A stretch of 50,631 nucleotides of DNA, taken from NCBI RefSeq assembly GCF_001194135.2, contig NC_068981.1:133894684-133945314 (forward strand), in the 5' to 3' direction. Numbering within the stretch: the stretch's first letter is position 1; each line of letters starts with the position of its first letter. This document shows, piece after piece, positions 7,288-50,631 of the stretch. Below the pieces are notes generated by a model. The model did not search any database. It had not been told where the DNA came from and saw only the letters and a list, made by a program, of their open reading frames with translations. The position numbers and the translations under genes are program-made. Source of the stretch: Octopus bimaculoides. Taxonomy: Eukaryota.

Positions 7288-7801
7288 CAGGTGTGACTGT
7301 GTAGTTAAGAAACTTGCTTCCCAACCATATGGTCTTGGGTTCTGTCCCACTGTGTGGCACTTTGGGCAAGTGCCTTCTACTATAACTCCTTGCCAACTAA
7401 AGCTTTGTGAAAGGATTTAGTTGACTGAAAGAAGACCATCATATCGTGATGGCACCTGTGCCCAGTGTCGCCTTTCTAGCACTTGTGCCGGTGGCACGTG
7501 TAAAGACTTTCGAGCGAGATCGTTGCCAGTGCCGCTGGACTAGCTCTTGTGCAGGTGGCACGTAAAATACACCATTTTGAGTGTGGCCATTGCCAGTACC
7601 GCCTGACTGGCCTTCATGCCAGTGGCACGTAAAAACACCCACTACACTCTCAGAATGGTTGGCGTTAGGAAGGGCATCCAGCTGTAGAAATTCTGCCAAA
7701 TCAGATTGGAGCCTGGTGTAGCCATCTGGTTCACCAGTCCTCAATCAAATCGTCCAACCCATGCTAGCATGGAAAGCAGACGTTAAACGATGATGATGAT
7801 A
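7288..7801 (+). mobile_element. Family-A head (7288-7435) joined to a family-B body and RTE-like tail (7438-7801)
   Basis: tRNA-like head; body matches 20310-20660; ends GACGTTAAACGATGATGATGAT. Confidence 0.85.
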
Positions 7802-9654: not shown

Positions 9655-9975
9655 TTTTATCTTTTACTTCTTTCAATCATTGGGCTGTGGTTATGCTAAG
9701 ATACCATCCTGAAGGGTTTTGTCAAACAAACTAACCCCTGTACTTTTTTTTTTAAGTTCGGCACTTATTCTATCAGTCTCATTTGCCGAAACCACTAAGT
9801 TACAGGGATGTAAATGAACCAACATCAGTTGTCAAGAAGTGGAACATACACATAAGTAAAGGCACACACACAATGGGTTCAGTACTTAGAAAGATTGTTA
9901 TTTGATTCTAATTCTATAAAAAGCAAACACATATACAAACACATGTATATATAAATATATATACAACAGGCTTCT
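9655..9975 (-). mobile_element. SINE family A 3' half, diverged
   Basis: Matches the family-A tail; abuts the truncated integrase end of the Gypsy element. Confidence 0.65.
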
Positions 9976-12900
9976 TGGATTGAGGGTCACTCTGTATATT
10001 CTTAAGAAATTTGTCAATGCTTCATTGTTACTTAATTCATTTTTCGCTTTTCTTAATGCTCTCTTAAAAGTGTCCACAAATCTTTCTACCTGCCTGTTTG
10101 ACCTGGGGTGGTAGTGTGGAGTGAAAATATGCTTTATCACATGCCTCTTACAGTTCTTGAATTCATACCCAGAGAACTGCGCTGTTGTCTGAAACTAATG
10201 TGTCAAGGACATTATATTACGCAAACAATTCATATCAGACTTTATAGTTGTCTTAGAGGTTGGTCTATAGCGCCTGCAAACCTCTAAGCCACTTAGTACA
10301 GCTATTTACTATGATTAAGTAGTAAGCGTCGTTTACCGGTCCGGCATAGTCAATGTGTAACCTAGACCATGGGTTCTCTGTCTCTGGCCATGATTAATAT
10401 TTTACCAGCAGGGCTTTGGCTACGAGTGCACAGCCTTGGCATGTTCTCATCAAGTTTTCAATATCTTGGTCCATAGACAGCCAATAGACATAACTACTCA
10501 TCAGAGCCTTCATCCTTGCCATTCCTGGATGTCTGCTGTAAAATTGTTGCAGTACATCTTTTGTAGTTAGAACCACCACTCTTTGGGCATACATCAGAAT
10601 ATTATCACAAATTGAAAACCTGCTGTCATCTGAATTTTTATTTTGTTAATTTTTTTAAAGCTTCTTTCATTTTCATAATATACTCATCACCTACAGCTTT
10701 CATTCTTATATCCTGTGCAGTCACTGGTAGTTCTTGGATAATCTTCATCATAACACTTTTAATTTCACTTTCTGCCTGCAGTGCAGCTATAATAAGTCTC
10801 TTCTAGTAGTTCCATATTTTTTGGAATTGACTGATTTTTTTTTTCAATGGAATGTATTGCATTTTGAAATTATAGTTCAGTAATATTACACCCCAACATT
10901 GCAGGCAGTTCACAGTATGAGTTGGTAACCCTTTTTTAGACCCATAAATCAACAGCAAAGGTCTATGGTCTATTTGCAATAAAAAAATTTCAGCCATGCA
11001 GAAACCTGTGAAATTTTTTAACAGCAAAAATAATTGCTAAGGCCTCCTTTTCAATTTTACTATATCTCTTCTCTGCAGCTATTAGCAAGCGCAAAACATG
11101 AACCACTGGTTTTGTACTTCCGTCTTCATATTTATGAAGTAGAACAGCACCTAATCCATGCTCAGAAGCATCAGACACTACAATGATGTCCATTTCGAGA
11201 TGATAATGTGCTAACAACAGGTCTGAGATGAGAATTTTTTTTATTTCTTCAAAAGTGGCATTTACTCCTTTTTTTAATAAGTCATTCAATGGAGCTCTTA
11301 ACTTGTGCATATTAGGAATGTAATTTTGGTTGTAGTTTGCCAGCCCAAGAAATGCTTGTAAAGTTGGAATATTTGTCAGCGCAGGCATATTCCTTATTGC
11401 ATCTACCCTTGATGGGTCAGGACGTCTACCACTTTTATCAATTATTTGCCCTATGTACTTAATTTAGGGTAGAAAGAATTCGCATTTTTCTTCACTCAAA
11501 GTGAATCCAAAAACTTTAGTTCCACATGCTGTTCGCGAGAATTACTCTTGATCAAAATATCGTCCAAGTATGGGATTGCAAATTCACAATCAGATAGCAN
11601 NNNNNNNNNCAATCCTCTGTGTGTATTTATTGTCAAATACTTTGAGCATTTTTCATTTACTTCTCTCTGTAAATAGGCTTCAGACAGATCTAATTTGGGA
11701 AAAAATTTTCCACCATTTAGCTTTGAAAAAATGTCCTCTGCAGTTGGGGTGGATGGTGGTATGTTTTTAAGCAGTTGTTCAATTCTGTAGAGAAATCAGC
11801 ACACTGCCTTTTTTTTTTTTTTTTTTAATACATACCGTGGGTGCTGCCCACTTTGAGTAACCCACCTTTTTGATGACTCCACTCTTTTTGAGTCTGTCCA
11901 ACTCTTCATTTACGGTTTGAATTGCCCCAAATGGCACTTTTCTGTTTGCTTTAAATACAGGTACAGCGCTTTCACTTACTTGGAAATAGGCTTCTGTCTT
12001 TCTACAGCATTTTATTTCACTTTTTTTCTTCAGTTCTTCCAAAGACTTGTTTTTAACGGGACAACTATTTATGTTATTGCAGTAAAGGTTTATGGGGCGA
12101 TACCAAAAATCAAATAGTTCTAACCAATCTATGCCAAACAGATGGATTGTATTATCCACAATGAATAATTATGCTTCGCTGTCTCTCCTTGAAATGTGAC
12201 ATCGATACATGTTTTGCCCATGAAATGTAATTTATCACCCATTACACCACACACTATTTTTGCTGTTTTACGTAATCTTGGTTTACCAGTTTCCTTCCAA
12301 GTATCCACATTTATAATCAAGATGTCACTACCTAATTTGGTATTCACATCATTTATTTTTATGAGCATAAGTCTTCTTGTTTTTCCATTGCAATCACTCT
12401 CTGCTGAAAACACCTTAGAACTTTTTGTGTTTGAGTCTCATAGTCTTGTTCTACAATGAGAACTCCTGTGTCTCCCAGCTTCTGACAACTGTAGCACTTT
12501 TTGTTTTTAAACGGGCAATCCTTTTTGTAGTATAGTCCTCCACAACCATAATACAGATTAGGGCCTGACACATTTTTTTATTGTACTTTCCGGGACAACA
12601 CATTTGAATTTTTGCAGAGTCTTTATCTTGTATCTTTTTCACATCATGTTTAAGATTTACCATAGTCTGACATTCTTCTGCAGTGGTTTATAGAGATAAA
12701 TCCTGGTTCTCTTGCTCCATTTTTGAGAGAATCCTTGCCTGAATTTCTTTATTTTCGAGTGCTATAAGTCCTTGCACAAAGATAAGTGATTTGAACTTAT
12801 CCTGAGTGAGAACCTGAAGTTTGAAATTTTCACACATACGGTTCACTACACCAGCATAGGTGATAAAATCATCCTCCTGATTCTTTATTAAGTTCCAACA

Positions 12901-13345
12901 CTCCATTCTGGTGTTGAATAATGAACTTCTATCACAAAAATTTTTTCAAAGCAGTTCCACAATTTCTTAGAAACCAATCTCACTCGACTTTTTGGGCAGA
13001 ATAAAGTTTCCGTAACACTCATCTTCCAACTATGACTTGCACTCATTAAAAATTTCCTCATGTCTTCTATAATACACAGGAAACGTAATATCCTCCTCCA
13101 AATTATACATAAATTCAGAAATTGCATTAGCCATGCCATCTGGTGTAAACGAACTTACTGGATTTTCGGACTTCACCGACTGTAGCTCAATTAATTGTTG
13201 TTATAGTTTTTGTTTTGTTTTTGCAACTCTTGTAGTTGTTCCTGTTGCTTCCATTGAAGCTGTACTACTGCAGCTAATAGGTTTTCTATGACACAAAAGT
13301 TGTCAAATAACCAATGTGAGTTTCGAATGATCCTTGTCACCAGAT
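9976..13345 (-). mobile_element. Degenerate Ty3/Gypsy LTR retrotransposon internal region (gag-protease-RT-RNaseH-integrase), antisense in a GID4 intron
   Basis: Fragments in Gypsy order: Q-rich gag N-terminus and FKLQVLTQDKFKSLIFVQGL; CCHC-like knuckle; protease region; RT (PVFKANRKVPFG, KLDLSEAYLQ, YLDD at rc 11559-11570); RNaseH (SDASEHGLGAVL, YSKIEKEALAIIFAVKKFH); integrase (HPGMARMKAL, YHPRSNRQVERFVDTFKRAL). Many stops and frameshifts. PBS-like TGGTGACAAGGA at rc 13331-13342. No paired LTRs recognised. Confidence 0.92.
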
Positions 13346-13380: not shown

Positions 13381-13779
13381 AGTGTATGGCTGTGTGGTAA
13401 GTAGCTTGCTTACCAACCACATGGTTCTGGGTTCAGTCCCACTGCATGGCACCTTGGGCAAGTGTCTTCTACTATAGCCTCGGGCCGACCAAAGCCTTGT
13501 GAGTGGATTTGGTAGACGGAAACTGAAAGAAGCCCGTCGTATATATGTATATATATGTGTATGCATGTGTATATGTTTGTGTGTCTGTGTTTGTCCCCCC
13601 AACATCGCTTGACAACCGATGCTGGTGTGTTTACGTCCCCGTTACTTAGCATTTTGACAAAAGAGGCCGATAGAATAAGTACTAGGCTTACAAAGAATAA
13701 GTCCTGGGGTCGATTTGCTCAACTAAAGGCGGTGCTCCAGCATGGCCACAGTCAAATGACTGAAACAAGTAAAAGAGTA
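13381..13779 (+). mobile_element. SINE family A, full length
   Basis: Head, internal (AT/GT)n tract and TGAAACAAGTAAAAGAGTA tail. Confidence 0.92.
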
Positions 13780-18700: not shown

Positions 18701-18921
18701 AACTGGGCAAAAATAAGTTGAAATCATTTCACCTTACTTAGCTTGGAGTGGAGAGCATGATCATTATGACTTTATACTTTCTATGACATCATAGCTAAAG
18801 AAGGGGCCCTTACTACAGCCACTTGGCCTGCTAGATGTTGTAGCTAAATCTGCCTCAAACACAGCCTACTATCTTCCATAAAAAAGGATATATTAACAAT
18901 GTAGCCCTCTATATTATATAT

Positions 18922-19190
18922 TCTCTTTTACTCTTTTACTTGTTTCAGTCATGTGACTGCGGCCATGCTGGAGCACCGCCTTTATTTGAGCAAATCGACC
19001 CCAGGACTTATTCTTTGTAAGCCTAGTACTTATTCTATCGGTCTCTTTTGCCGAACCGCTAAGTTACAGGGACGTAAACACACCAGCATTGGTTGTCAAG
19101 CGATGTTGGGGGGACAAACACAAACACACATATATATACATATATATGACGGGCTTCTTTCAGTTTCCGTCTACCAAATCCACTCACAAA
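18922..19190 (-). mobile_element. SINE family A, 5'-truncated, young
   Basis: High similarity to 13381-13779. Confidence 0.92.
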
Positions 19191-19921
19191 TATATATATA
19201 CATACATGAAGATGTAGGGTGGGGATGAGTTTACATATATATATATATATGTAAAGGTGGGATGCTTACAGTGAGAATCCTTTGATCATAGGTCTCTTGA
19301 TTAAAGCTAGCCTTGGGTTGAACAACAACAACAACTCATTTCATGGCTTGTTTTTTGTTGTTAGTATAGCAGAGACAGTACAACTTCTATGTTGAAAAGC
19401 ATCTGGTGTAATCACTTGTTACATTCAACCATTGATTTCTCAGGGGTCAAGAAAGTAAATTAAAATAAACAACTGTAATATTTCACACCAGAGTCAGTTA
19501 CTACATCCATCTTAGCATGCTTATTGAAAGGAGTTGAGTTTTCGCACTGTTTTGCATTGTTTAAGAATATTTAATGAATCCATATGAAATAAAATCTTGT
19601 CTTCAAATATTTCAGGATAAGAAAATTTTGCACAATCACTAGTGAGTTAGCCAAAATCTTTGCATATCTGGTACTCAGCTTTTATATGCCAAATTCAAAT
19701 CCTACCAGGTTTGACATTTCCATTTCTTCCCTTCTTGGATCCCTGAAAAAATACCAGTAATACACTGTGATCAATGAGAAACCTTAGTCTTTATATAAAA
19801 ACAAGACAGAAATTACATTATTGTTACTGTTGTTATTTAATTTTGTCTTTCATCTGATAGGAGACTGGTCTCAATATGTTTTAATACTTAGTTTTGTCCA
19901 TTTTTATGCAGATTCTTCTTA

Positions 19922-20309: not shown

Positions 20310-20660
20310 GAAACCATCAATGGCACCTGTGCCCAGCATCGCCTTCCTGGCACGTGTAAAGACTTTTGAGCGAGATCATTGCCGGTGCCGCCGAACTGGC
20401 TCTTGTGCCGGTGGCACGTAAAATACACCATTTTGAGCATGGCCATTGCCAGTACCACCTGACTGGCCTTCGTGCTGGTGGCACGTAAAAGCACCCACTA
20501 CACTCTGAGTGGTTGGTGTTAGGAAGGGCATCCAGCTGTAGAAATCAGATTGGAGCCTGGTGTAGCCATCTGGTCTCACCAGTCCTCAGTCAAATCGTCC
20601 AACCCATGCTAGCATGGAAAGCGGACGTTAAACGACAATGATGATGATGATGATGATGAT
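20310..20660 (+). mobile_element. SINE family B body with RTE-like tail
   Basis: Near-identical to 7438-7801; ends GGACGTTAAACGACAATGATGATG. Confidence 0.9.
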
Positions 20661-21155: not shown

Positions 21156-21425
21156 CCATAATTATTATAACTACTACTACTATTACTACTACTGCTACTA
21201 CTACTACTGCTACTACTACTACTTTTCCCTTTTTACTTCCAGCTTTATATCCTGTAGAGTTAGGTCCTAACTATGGTCATGGGGTGTTACAGAGTAAGAT
21301 GTCACTCAGTTACTTTGCAATCACATGGCCTTGAGTTCAATCCCACTCCAAAACCTTGTGAATGGATGATTTGATAAGCAGAAACTGGAAGCAGTCCATC
21401 ATATGTGTGTATATTTATGTATATT

Positions 21426-21772
21426 GTCATCATCATCATCATTTAGCATCTGCTTTCCATGCTGGTATGGGTTAGATGGTTTGACTGGAACTGGTAAGCT
21501 GGAGAGCTGCACCAGGCTCCAATCTGATTTGGCATGGTTTCTACAGCTGGAGGCCCTTCCTAAGGCAAACTACTCTAAGAGTGTAATGGGTACTTTTTAC
21601 ATGCCACCGGCATGAGTGTTTTTATGTGCCACCAGCACAGGTGCTCTTTTGTACCACTGGCCTGAGTGCCAGTTACAGGACAGCAGCATATCGCCAAAAG
21701 TCTCGGTCATTTGTCATCTCCTCTGTGAGGCCGAATGTTCAAAGATCGTGTTTCACCACCTCGTAACATGCA
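21426..21772 (-). mobile_element. SINE family B-related copy
   Basis: (ATC)n tail and family-B 3' sequence; a similar copy lies at 22084-22420. Confidence 0.75.
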
Positions 21773-22926: not shown

Positions 22927-23283
22927 GGCATGGCTGTGTGGTAAGAAGCTTGCTTCCCAATCACATGGTTCCAGGTTCAGTCTAACTGCATGGCACCTTG
23001 AGCAAGTGTCTTCTACTATAGCTTCAGGCCAACCAAAGCCTTGTGAGTGGATTTAGTAGACAGAAACTGAAAGAAGCCCATCATATATATGTATATGTTT
23101 GTCCCCCACCCACCCACCATCACTTGACAACCAATGGTGGTGTGTTTACATCCCCGTAACTTAGCAGTTCAGCCTAAGAGACTGATAGAATAATTACTAG
23201 GCTTACAAACAGTAAGTCCTGGGGTCGATTTGTTCAACTAAAGGCAGTGCTTCAGCTAAATGACTGAAACAAATAAAAGAATA
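22927..23283 (+). mobile_element. SINE family A, full length
   Basis: Head-to-tail match; an older copy lies immediately upstream (about 22535-22912). Confidence 0.85.
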
Positions 23284-23496
23284 ATAGCAAAAGACTGTTT
23301 ACCTATCAATTGATTACAAGAGTTGTATCTGAAACTACCAATCGTGGCAAAAATATGTTCCCAGCATAACTTGTTATATGACACTCTAAGTAGTATATAT
23401 AATGACCAAGAGAGATAAACCCATTAGGATTATAGTTATCTCCCTTTAGGGGACACACAAACAGAAGCAGATGGAGACACACTGTCAATTATGTTA

Positions 23497-23835
23497 TCTT
23501 TTACTTGTTTCAGTCATTAGACTTGGATATCACCTTGAAGAGATTTTACTCAGGATATTTTTTAAAGCCTTGGTCTCTTTTGCCAAACTACTAAGTTATG
23601 GAGATGTAGATAAACCAACACTGATTGTCAAAGTAGTGGGGGACAAACAGAGACACACACATATATATATATATGTGTATATATATATAACAGGCTTTTT
23701 TTCAGTTTCTGTCTACCAAATCCACTCACAAGGCCTTGTTCAGTCTGAGACTATAGTAGAAGATACTTGCTCAAGATACCATGTAGTGAGACTGAACCTG
23801 GAACCATTCGGTTGGGAAGCAAACTTCTTGTCACA
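23497..23835 (-). mobile_element. SINE family A, diverged
   Basis: Tail-to-head match in reverse. Confidence 0.8.
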
Positions 23836-25261
23836 CATTACTGAAATAAAGTATTGAATATAACCGAGACAATAGAAAACCCGACTAAATATACCATAGT
23901 ATTTAACAATTGCTTCATATCCAAGTTCAAAGTACAAATCCCACAATACCTCATTCTCCTTTTAATAGTCTCATCATCATCATCATCCTTTAGTGTCCAT
24001 CTCCCATGCAGGCATGGGTTGAACGGTTTGACAGGAGCCAGCCAGGCAGAAGACTACCCCAGGCTACTGTGTCTGTTTTGGCAAGGTCTTTACGGCTGGA
24101 TGCCCTTACTAACACCAAGTCTTTTTAAATAATACTCAGTAATATACTTGGGGTCATTACAATTGACTATATCTCTTAATTTTAATCATTGGTTATCTAC
24201 CAAAGTATAAATCGTCGTTAAGACTGACCAGCCTGGTGCAAGAACAGTCCATTAAGCAAAGTTCGGTTCTTCATTGAAACTAATCTACTTCATTTATGTC
24301 AGTATTTCTTAAGGATGGAAACTTGTGAATAGTAAAAAGGAGTAGACAAATTGATATGTTTAATAGAATTAGATTGTTTTAAACATTTTTCAGTTTGTCG
24401 AACATCATAGCAAAGAAGGAATTATATGGATGTAGAGGGTATCAGCAATCTTGGAAGGAATGCTGTACAGAGAACGTCACCTTTTAAGTGCATGAAGACT
24501 AAAATGGCAGATAAGGCAAAAGAACCCAGCATGGGTAAATGGTTCAGAAGGCATTACAGTAAGATGTATGGTACATCTAGAGTACTCTCTTCATGGAATA
24601 CAAGCTTGTGGCCAGTCTCTATGGAAGGGATTGGGACCCTACCATGTACATAATTGCATCCATAGTAAATCATGGATCTTTGACTAACTGAATAGAGATC
24701 TTTGATATTCAACTTGCTGAGAGCAGAAAGCAGGTGGTGGACCAGCTGAATCATTAAAACATCTTATGGTATTTAGTTATAGCTCTCTATATTCTGAGTT
24801 CAATCCTACCTAGGCCAGCTTAGCTTTTCATCCTTCTAAAATCAATAAGGTACAAGTCGAGTCCTGGAGTTGATTTAATCGACTAAATACTTCCCTAAAA
24901 AAATTGTCCCTATGTAAAACTACATTGAATTTATATGTATTTGGTAGTGGGGCAGTTTAAATGCCTTATATAAAATTAGCCCTTTTTCTCTAGTTTGCCA
25001 TTGTTGCTTACAAGAAGACAGTGTGTTATTGTTGTTTATCTCCAATAAACCAGACCTATGATCAATATGATTCCAGCCATGACTATCCTGTCTTTCTTTC
25101 CAAGTATAGTTTATCTAGAACCATATGCAATATGTTTTTAACGTACTTTTCAACTATAGAATGTGACTTGACACATTTGGCTGCTATTTCTAGCAGGACC
25201 ATGTAGAGATTCCTCTGTTGACTCATGGACAGTGAAATCAGTGCTGAATGTACTGAGTGAA

Positions 25262-27479: not shown

Positions 27480-28085
27480 CTGCATTTCAATGATGAACCA
27501 AAAACTTCAATCTAGGAGAAAGAAGAGAACCCACTGTGTTAACATGATTTTGAATTTGATCAAGTGATTTAAGACTCAAAGAAGGTGCCAACTCAAAGAT
27601 GACAGCAGCATTCAATACAAGGTCAAATGGTGGCCTTATAGAGATACATCATACTCTCAAGCATAAGAAATTTGCAAGCATGGAGGAGAGATCCAACCTT
27701 TTTGGAAGCTGACATAGTGATTGACCAAGCAAATTTATTCCAAAAGAAACCCCTAGTCAAAGTCAAGAGGTCAGATATTGAAACTTTCTGGTAGGTCAAC
27801 CCTGCTAGCAATCGGAGAAAGAAATGGCTACCTATGATGATTAATTGACATACACTTTGTCTTGCCTGCATTAAAATTCATCAGCTAGTCATTATCCCTC
27901 TCCATAATTATGCAAAGATCATTCCCAAGAAAGACAGGTTGATCAAGACTGCTAATTTTATCATGACAAGAGTAAACAGCAGTATCATCAGAATAGATGG
28001 TGAATCTAGAAATATGATCTGAAAGTTCCTTAATGAAAAGGAGGAAAAGAATAGGAGCAAGTACAGAACCTTGAGACACTCCTGC
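27480..28085 (-). mobile_element. CR1/L2-group LINE reverse transcriptase fragment, degenerate
   Basis: SQGSVLAPILFLLFIKEL...IYSDDTAVY (PQGSVLGP and YADD motifs) and KVGSL...YLYKATI. Confidence 0.82.
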
Positions 28086-28202
28086 ATTGATAGCATATGA
28101 CTTTGCTTGCTGACGATCATGTTGTTGTTTAGCCCCAGTTTAGCCCTGACTGAGCAGACTTATGATCAAAAGCATTCCACTTGTAACCATTTTTAAAAAA
28201 TT

Positions 28203-31711: not shown

Positions 31712-32581
31712 TTAAAATATGCAAATGCGTAAATACATACCGACAAACTCTAATATTTAACACTACTGTAATATGTGGTAGATGGTTTTTGTCAAGGACC
31801 ATTTATGGTCCAGAGGTCACCCCGTTTGGAAGCACTGTTATAGGAAATTGTGAAATGTCCTTTATTTATTAGTTGCTGAGAGATGTTAGATATTAAATGA
31901 TTTTGATAGGAAGTTGCCTAAAGAAGCTGGTGGGAAAAGCTCTTCAGGAGATTTTAGGCAAGCCATTTTTGGATGATTCTTATTATGCAGGATCATATTT
32001 TTTTTTTTTTTTTAATGATATTCATCCTTTTCATTAATATTAATTTATTTTCGTGCTAAGGTTATTTTAAATAATACATTTATTTGTATACATTAAATGT
32101 AAATGTTGACATAGATACAATTTAAACAGAAAATGGTAGGGACAAGTTGAACATCAAGTGGAACCTTGTTTTGTTTGAAGTTCTTTGTTGTTTTGGGTTG
32201 TTTTTTTAAGTGAGGTGCAGTAACACAATATCTATCTATATCCATGTTTACATTTAGTAATCTACAAATTAGATTATTCATTTTTATTGAAATGATGTTG
32301 GATTATTTAACCATTTCACATTACCCTCTCCTAACACAAAACATTTGTTCCCCAAACTACCTTCTCCTCTCCTAGTTCCAGTTATATGGTAAATAGTGAG
32401 GAAAAAATTATCATGGCAGATACAAAAAATAATAATGAATTTATTAATAGTAATAAATTGTATTGTTTTACAACATGTTTTTTTTTGTATTTTTATGAAA
32501 TAAAATTTGTAAAAGATTATGAAATGCATAGTATAATCCACGGTGCATTTTACATTATATATATATATATATAGTTGTGTG

Positions 32582-32746
32582 CAAGCATATTTAACCTGTT
32601 TGTGTATATTCAGATGTGGAAAGACAATACCCTGCACAAGTTGTTTCAAGATATTGCCTATAAGAAGAATTTCTTCTCTCAAGACATCTTGTGCAGTGTA
32701 TTGTCTTTCTATGTCTGAGTGTATATGAACATGTTAAATATTCCTG
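32582..32746 (+). other. 70-bp-arm inverted repeat with 25-nt loop (long RNA-hairpin candidate)
   Basis: Arms 32582-32651 and 32677-32746; hand pairing gives 54 Watson-Crick, 9 G.U and 7 true mismatches. Confidence 0.85.
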
Positions 32747-32929
32747 TACATAACTATACTTCATTCAAGACTGCTTAGTGCACAACTTATAAATATATAA
32801 GTACATACATACATATGTTTGTATGTATGTATGTATGTATGTATGCATGTGTGTATGTATTTGTGAATATCTCTATATGTATGTATATATATATATATAT
32901 GACATCAAGCAAGGTGAAAGTGTTGTAAT

Positions 32930-34548: not shown

Positions 34549-35133
34549 TAATGGCTTGTGTGGTGTGTGTGTGTGTGTTATATCGACTATTATGACTCTT
34601 CCACAAACATAAATGTTTCAGTTTGAATACATGAGCTCATATATAATGTACACACACACATGTATGTATATTTGTGTGTGCGTGTGTGTTAACTCTTTTA
34701 TTTTCAGTTATTGAACTGTGGCCATGATGGGGTACAACCTGTGAAGATTTAGTCCCAATACTTATCTCAGTTTGGTATATACTTTATCAGTCTCTATTTA
34801 TTGAATTACTAAGGTTAAAGAGCCTTAGCATAAACAAAACTATTGTTTAGACAGGGATAAACATAGCTACAAATACACACAAACATGTACACATAACTGC
34901 TTTTGCACAATTTCCCTCAACAAAATAACATTCAAAATTCACAAGTTTGTAGTTTCACCATCATAGTAAATTGTATTATTTTAGTTACTGCTCTATAAAG
35001 AGTAATATAACATTGAACTGTTGTTTATTCTCTTCTGAATACACTGATAACAATATTAATTATTTTAAGATTAGATTGTTCAATACACTAACCTTATTGA
35101 CTGTGTGATTGATCCATGTCAGTCTTGATTTCA

Positions 35134-35541
35134 GGCGTAGGAGTGGCTGTGTGGTAAGTAGCTTACTTACCAACCACATGGTTCCGGGTTCAGTCCCACT
35201 GCATGACACATTGGGCAAGTGTCTTCTACTATAGCCTTGGGCCAACCAAAGCCTTGTGAGTGGATTTGGTAGACAGAAACTGAAAGAAGCCCATTATATA
35301 TATATATATATGTATATGTATGTGTGTGTGTATATGTTTGTGTGTCTCTGTTTGTCCCCCCAACATCGCTTGAAAACCGATGCTGGTGTGTTTACGTCCC
35401 CGTAACTTAGCGGTGCGGCTAAAGAGACCTATAGAATAAGTACTAGGCTTCCAAAGAATAAGTCCTGGGGGTCGATTAGCTCGACTAAAAGGCGGTGCTC
35501 CAGCATGGCCACAGTCAAATGACTGAAACAAGTAAAAGAGT
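35134..35541 (+). mobile_element. SINE family A, full length, young
   Basis: GGCGTAGGAGTGG head to AAAAGAGT tail; ATTTCA direct repeats at 35128-35133 and 35542-35547. Confidence 0.94.
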
Positions 35542-35972
35542 ATTTCAATATCTAGTACATCGTTCACTTAAACGATAAAGGCAATAATACATCTTATCAA
35601 CCCATTGGTTGGCTGTTTCTCAAAATCTGAAGCACAAGTTTTGTACTTGCACACAAGACATAACCGAAGTTCATCTAGCTATGGAAGGGAAATGAGGTGT
35701 GTTTTTTTGTTTTTATTACATAAAATTATCTTCAATACAGTGATGCCTTAGCTTGAGCAAGATATATTTCTCAAAGGTATCTTGATTTCAGAACTGAGTA
35801 TATGAATTCCTGCATTTCATTAAAACATTAACACTAACCTATTTACTAAGATATGGCAGAGATATTAATTCTTAGAACTGAACTAGTATGTGTGTGTGAG
35901 TGAGTGTTTGAAAAACCTGTGATCAGTATGGGCAAGGAATTAATTAAAATATGTAAAGTGACACCAATGAAA

Positions 35973-36235
35973 GAAAACAAAGATGAAAATATTGTGTTAC
36001 TTAACATGATCCTAGAATATTTCAGGAAAAATATCCTTTTTCAAATACAAGAAGTAAAATAACCAAAGTCTGGAGAAATGTGTTGCTGTTAGCAGCAAGC
36101 CATCCTAGTGGTTCACCAATAAGAACACATTTCTCCAGGCTTAGATTATTTTCCTTCTTTTATTTGAAAAGGAGTATTTTTCCCAAAATATTATGGGATC
36201 ATGCAAAGTAATACAATACTTTTATCTTTGCTTTT
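35973..36235. repeat. Decayed foldback/MITE-like inverted repeat (arms ~110 bp, 39-bp spacer)
   Basis: Arms about 35973-36084 and 36124-36235, with a perfect 15-bp core CTGGAGAAATGTGTT/AACACATTTCTCCAG. Confidence 0.8.
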
Positions 36236-48719: not shown

Positions 48720-48897
48720 CTTACTGTTTCTACTGGATAGCCATTCTTTTTTCTTATTGTCATTCTTTTCTCTTCCATGAAATTTATTCGCATCAGCCGT
48801 AACTTTTAGAAATTTCATCTAAAACTATATAGTTCCAGTGAATATATACAAGAATTGGTGAACGTAACGAATTCCTACCTAAGCCATTCAAAAGTGC

Positions 48898-49153
48898 GGT
48901 ACTACTAAAGCAGCGCGGACCCGATCGCTCAGTCGCGCGACAGGGCTAGCTAGTCGTGAGTGGTCGATCCTAACCCTAACCCTATTCCTAACCCTAAACA
49001 CGTATTCATTTGCACACGCGGGTTAGGGTTAGGGATAGGGTTAGGGACAGGGTTAGGGTTAGGGGATAGGGTTAGGGTTAGGATCGACCACTCAAGACTA
49101 GCTAGCGCGGACGCGCGACTGCGCGTTCGGGTCCGCGCTGCTTTAGTAGTACC
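48898..49153. mobile_element. 256-bp non-autonomous long-TIR element (Mutator/foldback-like) with inverted telomere-like repeats
   Basis: About 100-bp TIRs starting GG; exact 9-bp TSD CAAAAGTGC (48889-48897 and 49154-49162); empty sites at 47407-47415 and 50545-50553; (CCCTAA)-like tract 48969-48997 and (TTAGGG)-like tract 49020-49082. Confidence 0.95.
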
Positions 49154-50186
49154 CAAAAGTGCTTTTACAAGTATCTTTGCTTCCATTAAATTCCAAGTAC
49201 ATGTACTTCAATATTTTTCAAAATAAACAGAGAAAAAGTTATAATAACATTTAAAACAGAAAAAACCCCAGCGATTTCACAATATCGGGTTTCCCATACC
49301 AATTTTTTAACTCCGTTTTTAATTTCACGGTTAAAATTGTTAATATTTTTTCCTCAATTTGTTAATTTTTAAAAGTTATCCCCTCCCCTATTTCCATTCG
49401 GACTCTAAACTTGTCGTTCACCTTCGCATGCGTGTATGAAGATTTTGCAATCAACTAGACGATAGCCGGGCCACACTTCATGTGGTCGTTCGATAAGCTA
49501 GAAACAAGAATCAATTCTCCTTGAAAGCACGTTTTTCTAACGACTTATATATAAAACGAAAGATACATCGGACATATATATAGTCCAAGAGAGATTCTTT
49601 CGATTTGTGATACAAACATGAAAGTGGAAATAATAACGATATTTAGCAACGACCAATCAAACGTGTTCAATATCATGTTTCGTTTTTTCATAATTTCCTC
49701 GGATTCTAATATTTTCAACAACACTACAAATATGTAGTGAGAATTTATTGTATTTCTGTTTTGGTAAAGCTTCATCATGGAAGCCCTTTATTAAAGGCAT
49801 TCATTCAATGAAACGTGTACACTTGTTTCAGTTGTGTACTCTACACTACATTATGACATGAGGTATTGTTGAAATAAAAGTGAAATATTGCAGTATTTCC
49901 TAGATGTGATGGACTTCATATGTACTCAATCGTTGGCTTTTTTCATGAAGCGTTCACACTGGGATAGTTTTGACAATTTTAAAGAGCCTGTCTTGCGCCT
50001 AATTTGAATCATCAGCGGTCTTCCAATAAAAAAAAAATACACCGAGCGAAATATGCATTTGCGTACAAAACACATGATTTTCAAAGATTTAATGCAAACA
50101 GATATGATATGGACAATCGTAACTAGGAATGAAAAATATGATAAACACCTTCTAGAATTTACTATATCATTATTATTATTACAAAT

Positions 50187-50264
50187 ATGCAAATGAGGCA
50201 GCCTATTATGGGTAAGTGTACGAGATAGGGTATGTATATATTACGAAGCTTAGTAAACGCTATT
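50187..50264 (+). promoter_or_regulatory. U6 copy 3 promoter
   Basis: ATGCAAAT at 50187-50194, TATATAT at 50235-50241; ATTTGCGT at 50057 (-208). Confidence 0.8.
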
Positions 50265-50288
50265 GTACTAGCTACGGCGGTACATATT

Positions 50289-50321
<33 letters not shown>

Positions 50322-50372
50322 GGCCCCTGCGCAAGGATGACACGCAAATTCGTGAAGCGTTCCATATTTTTT
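50265..50372 (+). ncRNA. U6: U6 snRNA gene, copy 3
   Basis: Identical to copies 1 and 2. Confidence 0.98.
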
Positions 50373-50631
50373 CTTACTATTTCTACTGACATGGATATCC
50401 ATTTTTTTCTTGTTGTCATTCTCTTCTATTCCATGAAATTTATTCGTATCTTCCGTAACTTTCAGAAATTTCATCTAAAACTGTATAGTTCCAGTGAATA
50501 TATACAGAAATTGGTGAGCGTAACGAATTCCTGCGCAAGCCTTTCAAAAGTGCTTTTATAAGTTTTTTTGATTCCATTAAATTTTAAGTACAAGTACTTC
50601 AATGTTTTTTTTAAATAAATAGAGAAGAAGA

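Follow-up and report, generated by a model that had tools for sequence, protein, structure and literature searches.

A transposon-derived insertion with telomere-like tracts in its inverted repeats lies within the U6 snRNA gene array of Octopus bimaculoides

The octopod Octopus bimaculoides has a tandem array of genes for U6 small nuclear RNA (snRNA) toward the end of a 50,631-nucleotide stretch of contig NC_068981.1 (RefSeq assembly GCF_001194135.2, forward strand, positions 133,894,684 to 133,945,314). This whole stretch is referred to here as the window and is numbered from its first nucleotide; it belongs to a gapped draft assembly and has a GC content of about 35%. Rfam identifies three full-length tandem U6 genes, at 47127, 48612 and 50265, each of them intact (model positions 1-105, 113 bits), with the gene of array unit 2 occupying 48612-48718 on the + strand. 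Two related insertions lie in the spacers on either side of this gene: a 64-bp copy that ends 237 bp upstream of it, and a 256-bp copy that begins 179 bp downstream and carries telomere-like hexamers inside long inverted repeats. Here, we describe both insertions, their relationship to one another, and the kinds of mobile element and other processes from which they could derive.

The 256-bp element is non-coding and, by reading of the sequence, spans 48898-49153 with tips of the form GG...CC. It is bordered by an exact 9-bp direct repeat, CAAAAGTGC, found with a repeat finder at 48889-48897 on the left and 49154-49162 on the right, and the match breaks if this duplication is made either longer or shorter. 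Alignment of the three array units shows a single CAAAAGTGC with unbroken flanks in U6 units 1 and 3, and these empty sites indicate that the insertion was precise and is younger than the duplication of the units. The repeat finder also delimits two arms of 102 nt (48898-48999 and 49052-49153) that are 88% complementary without gaps; BLAST gives 92% over 101 nt, and exactly six positions differ between the arms within the outer 71 nt. An initial annotation of this sequence had described a GG-ended element of 256 bp with arms of about 100 bp, six mismatches in 71 nt, a 9-bp duplication without mismatch, and two sister units that lack the insertion, and each of these details was reproduced.

The outer 71 nt of each arm form a unique domain, which on the left (48898-48968, + strand) begins with the GG tip and has 61% GC, and on the right (49083-49153, - strand) has 62% GC and an observed/expected CpG ratio of 1.6. 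An internal palindrome, AGCGCGGAC...GTCCGCGCT, is retained in the right domain, from which the left one departs at the six positions noted above. A non-palindromic core of 22 bp, ACACGTATTCATTTGCACACGC (48998-49019, + strand), forms the loop. The predicted fold of the whole element as single-stranded DNA is a single long hairpin with a free energy of -114.7 kcal/mol (z = -23.8 relative to dinucleotide shuffles). The outer domain, for which both 49083-49153 and the smaller copy at 48311-48374 are listed, is compositionally foreign to its surroundings, with 62% GC and the high CpG ratio set in a spacer of 32% GC; its recent arrival, shielding from methylation, or constraint on a binding site might each account for this.

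The 21-nt sequence at the ends of the element, TACTACTAAAGCAGCGCGGAC, occurs four times in the window where none is expected, and all four occurrences are tips of the 256-bp and 64-bp elements. The 64-bp copy (48311-48374, + strand) was delimited by inverted-repeat finding, the scan with this terminus, and alignment of the units, and it lies 523 bp upstream of the 256-bp element, with the two starts 587 bp apart. It is flanked by its own A-rich 9-bp duplication, an imperfect one in which the right copy, AAAAAACAA (48375-48383), is identical at 7/9 positions to the left copy, AAAAAAATA (48302-48310). U6 unit 3 is without this element, and the alignment gap there amounts to the 64 bp plus about 9 bp. 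The two hits about 520 bp apart that the initial annotation had placed in the U6 cluster are thus borne out. The definite ends and target duplication of the 256-bp insertion, its empty sites in the sister units, and the existence of another copy that has its own duplication make it a mobile DNA-transposon derivative.

Comparison of the two copies indicates how the smaller one arose. Its left tip reads GC rather than GG, and the 48 nt that follow the tip are identical (48/48) to the right arm of the 256-bp element. As a whole it consists of two segments, nt 1-50 and nt 243-256, of a progenitor in which both arms were of the right type, and the junction falls in a 9-nt direct repeat, GTCCGCGCT, to which the internal palindrome of the inverted repeat gives rise. 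This composition and junction identify the 64-bp copy as an internal-deletion derivative that has lost 192 bp between 9-bp direct repeats. The comparison also marks the right arm as ancestral and the six left-arm differences as derived; three of the six cluster within 5 nt and abolish the palindrome. U6 units 1 and 2 have diverged by 8.6%, a rate at which 48/48 identity has a chance of about 0.013, so the two element copies are more closely related than the array units in which they reside. The 64-bp copy folds as a near-perfect hairpin (-30.7 kcal/mol) and lacks the telomere-like tract. It keeps only the terminal 50 nt, and anything needed for its own insertion therefore lies there.

The 64-bp copy illustrates cleanly how a miniature inverted-repeat transposable element (MITE) can shrink through palindrome-generated microhomology. 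Microhomology-mediated miniaturization has been proposed as an origin of MITEs for Stowaway-like families of Aedes (PMC3814204). The octopus copy fits this scheme as an internal deletion joined at a short direct repeat, of 9 nt; the Aedes families belong to another superfamily, and the octopus direct repeat stems from a palindrome within the inverted repeat.

That the insertions did not come from a transposon at all – being instead palindromic filler left by break repair with telomerase, or an artefact of draft assembly – is very improbable and largely refuted. Insertion of telomerase-templated hexamers at break sites is known (PMC2246262, PMC8537989), and the assembly does contain gaps. However, break repair makes no 9-bp target duplication, and it gives no second insertion elsewhere with identical 21-nt termini and a duplication of its own. 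An assembly artefact would leave no precise empty sites in paralogous units, and the interval 46950-50631 is gap-free. The related suggestion that the 256-bp insertion is a short interstitial telomeric sequence made by telomerase is ruled out by the inverted repeats and the target duplication.

The inner part of each arm is telomere-like. Tandem Repeats Finder reports CCTAAC x4.8 at 48969-48997 and GGGTTA x10.3 at 49020-49082, and these are the sole telomere-like arrays that it finds in the whole 50.6-kb window. The left block (48969-48997, + strand, showing the C-rich strand) reads (T)CCTAA CCCTAA CCCTAT TCCTAA CCCTAA and is one copy of a 30-nt block. The right tract (49020-49083, + strand) consists of GGG followed by block A (49023-49052) and block B (49053-49083), with base 49083 counted both as the end of this tract and as the start of the right unique domain. 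Blocks A and B are tandem copies of the pattern TTAGGG TTAGGG ATAGGG TTAGGG NNAGGN, parsed into hexamers as TTAGGG TTAGGG ATAGGG TTAGGG ACAGGG for A and TTAGGG TTAGGGG ATAGGG TTAGGG TTAGGA for B; they are 30/31 nt long and identical at 27/31 positions. Exact TTAGGG/CCCTAA units make up 6/10 of the hexamers on the right and 2/5 on the left. The counts given in the initial annotation, of about five CCCTAA-like and ten TTAGGG-like units around a 22-bp core with ten runs of three or more G residues, agree with these data.

The left block aligns with block B of the right tract at 29/32 identical positions, and the two have their variant hexamers in the same order, with ATAGGG third and TTAGGA at the junction TTAGGA|TCGACC. 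The shared variant order and the block identity show that the tract is homologous between the arms and grows by 30-nt blocks. The tracts of both arms accordingly have a single origin that was copied to both sides, and the asymmetry of five versus ten hexamers reflects one block duplication in the right arm; the base state of the tract is only five degenerate hexamers. Two independent telomere-repeat expansions or telomerase events in the arms are ruled out by the shared variant order, and slippage of single hexamers was rejected as the source of the asymmetry in favor of duplication of one 30-nt block. If telomerase made the block, it extended the core-side 3′ end, and did so once; a claim that the orientation of the tract excludes a telomerase origin was dropped, since orientation shows only which 3′ end would be extended.

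TTAGGG is the sole experimentally determined cephalopod telomere motif, from Amphioctopus (PMC13218726). The repeat unit of the tract is accordingly that of the host telomeres, and the initial annotation is supported, as regards cephalopods, in calling TTAGGG a molluscan telomere repeat. Its further comparison of the element to a miniature linear chromosome is not supported. The arrangement 5′-CCCTAA...core...TTAGGG-3′ follows automatically once a directional repeat sits inside an inverted repeat, with outward orientation one of two equally probable outcomes, and such a layout should be read with caution wherever inverted-repeat symmetry can produce it trivially. A 9-nt match of the core (TCATTTGCA) to the octamer-like region of the U6 promoter was considered and set aside, as it is at chance level (about 0.1 expected, by our own estimate).

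In the right tract the ten G runs yield two non-overlapping formal G-quadruplex motifs. Half of the G runs pair with the C-rich arm in the single-stranded fold, and a ViennaRNA fold in which quadruplexes are permitted, to be taken as indicative, retains one G-quadruplex in the unpaired extra block.

Placement of the two insertions about a single U6 gene raises the question of targeting. Were both insertions placed uniformly in the window, the chance of such proximity would be about 2%, and no further copy of the element is present elsewhere in the 50 kb. Local reinsertion is common for cut-and-paste elements. Two related insertions in one U6 unit are not random, and local reinsertion explains them equally as well as a preference for loci transcribed by RNA polymerase III (Pol III); the window contains no tRNA genes. 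In either case the insertions document DNA-transposon activity inside an octopus U6 array.

DNA transposons in U6 arrays have a precedent in Dada elements, which target U6, U1 and tRNA genes, are also found in U6 arrays of a mollusc, the oyster, and form the sole DNA-transposon superfamily known to target such arrays (PMC3706591). Dada lacks terminal inverted repeats and inserts within the U6 gene, at positions 65-70, duplicating 6-7 bp (PMC3706591), and it was excluded for the octopus insertions, which lie in spacers between intact U6 genes and have 9-bp duplications and, in the larger copy, 102-nt inverted repeats.

A stronger proposal is that the element is a dedicated carrier of telomere repeats or G-quadruplexes, with tracts in every copy, binding of TRF/POT1-like proteins or formation of quadruplexes, and a Pol III preference. 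The identity of the tract with the host telomere motif speaks for this, as do the G runs with their two formal motifs, the quadruplex that the predicted fold keeps in the extra block, and the two insertions that flank one U6 gene. Yet the sole other copy is without the tract, the base state is five degenerate hexamers, with only 2/5 units exact on the left and 6/10 on the right, and half of the G runs are paired with the C-rich arm in the single-stranded form. Other hairpin-type, MITE-like elements of the window lie far from U6 genes, and with two insertions in one unit targeting and local hopping are inseparable. On balance we hold such a dedicated carrier to be quite improbable. The initial annotation had supposed a family that spreads telomere and G-quadruplex cassettes, and had itself named copies without the tract as evidence to the contrary; the tract is present in one copy and absent from the other, though there by way of an internal deletion.

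A more far-reaching version, a long shot in our estimation, has the hexamers conserved throughout the family in octopods, with TTAGGG recognized by the transposase or by a recruited TRF-like Myb domain. Interstitial telomeric and G-quadruplex sites would then be seeded across the genome, the element would interact with telomeres or their proteins, and open Pol III chromatin would be preferred. If this were true, no telomere-bearing DNA transposon would have been described from an animal before, and the element would stand as the counterpart of TBE and Tel-1 in ciliates.

The explanation that we favor, with a probability of roughly 0.6, is that the element is a non-autonomous foldback-type class II transposon, a MITE mobilized in trans, likely of the Foldback/Muta1 type among Mutator and Mutator-like elements (MULEs), in which the telomere block is a passenger. 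Typical of MULEs are duplications of most often 9 bp and inverted repeats of tens to hundreds of bp. MULEs make duplications of 8-11 bp and have unusually long inverted repeats (PMC6446971), and the corresponding values here are a duplication that is exact over 9 bp in the 256-bp copy and matches at 7/9 positions in the 64-bp copy, and arms of 102 nt that are 88-92% identical. The view of the initial annotation that a 9-bp duplication together with long G-ended inverted repeats points first to Mutator/Foldback elements agrees with these MULE values (PMC6446971), as well as with the elements Tm1 and Muta1.

Muta1 is a MULE of Aedes aegypti, termed a 'type 2 foldback', with 8-9-bp duplications, 145-bp inverted repeats, a terminal motif that starts with G, and subterminal tandem repeats (PMC5499845). 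These repeats, 12 bp in length, directly follow a terminal motif of 10 bp and were found to raise transposase binding and excision (PMC5499845). The natural non-autonomous derivative Muta1NA1 has three repeats in one arm and seven in the other (PMC5499845), a parallel to the five and ten hexamers of the octopus element. Where type-2 foldbacks have a terminal motif followed by subterminal tandem repeats, the octopus element has tandem hexamers in both arms that start 71 nt from the tip. It is unlike Muta1 in placing 71 nt of unique GC-rich sequence first, in having the host telomere hexamer as its repeat unit, and in that its transposase is a presumed one.

Tm1, a Mutator/Foldback family of Meloidogyne, makes duplications of 9 bp and includes MITE-like members; its inverted repeats are composite, and its arms are on average 93% identical (PMC3169594). 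The octopus element resembles Tm1, Drosophila Foldback and Tetris (8-10-bp duplications; PMC4079207) in its composite inverted repeats of variable length, each with an outer unique part and internal tandem repeats, and shares with them non-coding MITE-like members and arms about 90-93% identical. However, the repeat units of those elements (14 bp, about 220 bp, and 10-31 bp) are unrelated to telomeres, whereas the octopus unit is telomere-like, and those elements are larger and have been characterized genome-wide, whereas the octopus element is known from two linked copies.

Telomeric repeats within DNA-transposon ends are known from the TBE elements of Oxytricha, where the telomeric repeat of the host forms part of the inverted repeats and its C-rich strand reads 5′ (PMC4724952), as in the octopus element. 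TBE elements have this repeat at their outermost ends, duplicate 3 bp (ANT), are of the Tc1/mariner type with three open reading frames (ORFs), and are tied to programmed DNA elimination (PMC4724952). The octopus element, in contrast, has internal repeats, a 9-bp duplication, a length of 256 bp, no coding capacity, and a metazoan host. Membership in the TBE/Tec groups, with a telomeric repeat at the tip and a 3-bp ANT or a TA duplication, was rejected on these grounds: the tips here read GGTACTAC..., the tract starts at about nt 71-72, and the duplication is 9 bp. P-superfamily and Galileo-type foldbacks, which make 7-8-bp duplications, were likewise set aside in view of the 9 bp found here. 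So were hAT elements, in which the duplication is mostly 8 bp (PMC5499845) and the inverted repeats are short, as opposed to 9 bp and 102 nt.

Under the foldback-type reading, a DDE transposase supplied by another element would recognize the terminal 50 nt or so that are common to both copies, and would make staggered cuts in the target from which the 9-bp duplication follows. The telomere-like hexamers make up the inner domain of the long inverted repeats, which is itself repetitive. Both arms contain the same ancestral 30-nt block (TTAGGG TTAGGG ATAGGG TTAGGG TTAGGA), which underwent one tandem duplication on the right. The block most probably arose in one arm, as a short stretch of interstitial telomeric repeats either templated by telomerase or captured, and was then copied to the other arm. 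It would now travel as a passenger, and be at most an accessory transposase-binding repeat and not a working telomere. The 64-bp neighbor is the product of a 192-bp deletion between the 9-bp direct repeats created by the palindrome, and its location 523 bp away is compatible with local reinsertion. Given a block that is set back 71 nt from the tip, is identical to the telomere unit of the host, and does not occur in the 64-bp copy, the most likely origin is an interstitial telomeric sequence carried as a passenger, followed by an accessory transposase-binding repeat, with a telomere-related function the least likely.

Several observations weigh against this assignment. Among the ten longest informative ORFs of the window there is no transposase or autonomous partner, and only integrase, RNase H and reverse transcriptase domains are present. 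The collections scanned contain no copies beyond the two linked ones, which therefore make up the entire 'family'. In foldbacks of the Muta1 type the tandem repeats adjoin the terminal motif, whereas 71 nt of unique sequence intervene here. If the repeats are transposase sites, it is curious that they match the telomere motif of the host exactly; if they are a passenger, nothing accounts for their having been kept in both arms. The 64-bp copy could also have been inserted at full length and lost its interior on the spot, in which event it is no proof that the tract is dispensable. The 9-bp duplication is also compatible with Merlin elements, whose duplications are 8-9 bp.

It is accordingly possible, if rather unlikely, that an element of the same type was moved by a transposase of another superfamily, with Merlin the main candidate and Rehavkus another, should the latter stand apart from MULEs. 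The duplication length falls within the Merlin range, the hallmark of that superfamily is an IS1016-like transposase, and there is no transposase evidence that prefers a MULE over Merlin or Rehavkus. Rehavkus elements have 9-bp duplications, inverted repeats of 26-400 bp, and a minisatellite beside one repeat, but have so far been reported from arthropods and annelids only (PMC6446971). Inverted repeats longer than 100 bp, and foldback structures with internal tandem repeats, are documented mainly in the MULE/Foldback and P/Galileo groups (PMC5499845, PMC3169594), which favors the MULE/Foldback type over either alternative.

The insertion is real and familiar in kind, and the telomere-like inverted-repeat domain is an unusual detail, of interest only if the family conserves the block. 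If copies throughout the genome keep the TTAGGG block, the element would represent a concrete means by which a transposon disperses interstitial telomeric sequences through a cephalopod genome, and a rare animal counterpart of the telomere-bearing transposons of ciliates. The literature searched describes no transposon of an animal whose inverted repeats include telomere repeats, which is no proof that none exists.

Further copies were sought in several collections. An exact scan with the 21-nt terminus gave no match in JGI metagenomes, IMG/VR viral contigs or GTDB genomes. A scan with the junction between the unique domain and the telomere tract gave two matches (L005 and L006), both of them true telomere tracts of an unrelated marine eukaryote in which the eight extra shared bases are due to chance. 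Three 20-kb loci of Octopus vulgaris (GCA_951406725.2; 61 kb) do not contain the element, and the lone 13-nt match in them is a chance one. Translated inverted-repeat ORFs, one per direction, were compared with 5.8 billion proteins through a word index and with 1.84 billion representatives exhaustively, and only one low-complexity match was returned. Exact look-ups of an ORF in the U6 spacer and of two ORFs within the element found none of them on record. The second of the junction matches, L006 (JGI metagenome contig Ga0115001_10091458, 1247-1994), comes from an unrelated microeukaryote and has several TTAGGG/CCCTAA tracts in alternating orientation, including a (CCCTAA)n – about 70 nt – (TTAGGG)n arrangement like that of the interior of the octopus element; no common inverted repeat was found.

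Other inverted-repeat structures are present in the window. About 1 kb upstream of the U6 array, a palindromic element of 1,011 bp (45119-46129) has arms of at least 335 nt that are 96-100% complementary around an assembly gap (45455-45701), and lies between two perfect copies of an 8-bp direct repeat, TGAAGGAG (45111-45118 and 46130-46137). This is a further insertion of the foldback type, unrelated to the first, in which the 100% identity of the inner arms next to the gap could partly be an assembly effect. Directly upstream of the first U6 unit, 55-nt inverted repeats that are 84% complementary and 388 bp apart (46196-46693) probably represent another small terminal-inverted-repeat element. 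Two hairpin-like sequences lie far from any U6 gene, one at 35974-36234 (arms of 111 nt, 84%; loop of 39 nt) and one at 32570-32758 (arms of 82 nt, 78%; loop of 25 nt), both near the size of the 256-bp element and unrelated to it in sequence. The occurrence of unrelated inverted-repeat elements both near the array and far away indicates that foldback-like MITEs are simply common in this stretch, as they appear to be in the octopus genome.

Retroelements are also represented. A short interspersed element (SINE) of about 400 bp, headed by a tRNA-like sequence and with an internal (TA/TG)n microsatellite, is present in at least seven copies (981-1367, 13387-13779, 18905-19225, 22931-23287, 23450-23854, 35133-35543 and 40081-40519). 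It is common to the window and the three O. vulgaris loci of GCA_951406725.2, with up to 96.6% nucleotide identity, and translation of its ORFs gives matches of 95% and 87% identity to 'Hypothetical predicted protein [Octopus vulgaris]'; these SINE matches in themselves mark the host as an octopod. A diverged U6 sequence (1375-1470, on the opposite, - strand; 72.6 bits) reads through the T-run and after a few bases gives way to the tRNA-like 5′ head of a complete SINE (from about 1367 to 981, - strand), with a fragment of the middle region of another SINE just upstream of it. The segment 981-1470 (- strand) looks like a U6-SINE chimeric retrocopy, such as results from template switching by the reverse transcriptase of a long interspersed element (LINE). 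A LINE fragment with an RVT_1 domain is present at 27888-28139 (- strand). A degenerate pol region of a long terminal repeat retrotransposon (9900-13150, - strand), interrupted by stops and a small gap, retains Integrase_H2C2, rve_3 and RT_RNaseH domains; its closest database relatives are only 66% identical in amino acids and 72% in nucleotides, and no octopus SINE lies near them. Another family of interspersed repeats, recognized by the translated motif FLQLDALPN(A/T)NHSES, occurs at 7442-7744, 20320-20544, 21370-21612 and 43704-44057.

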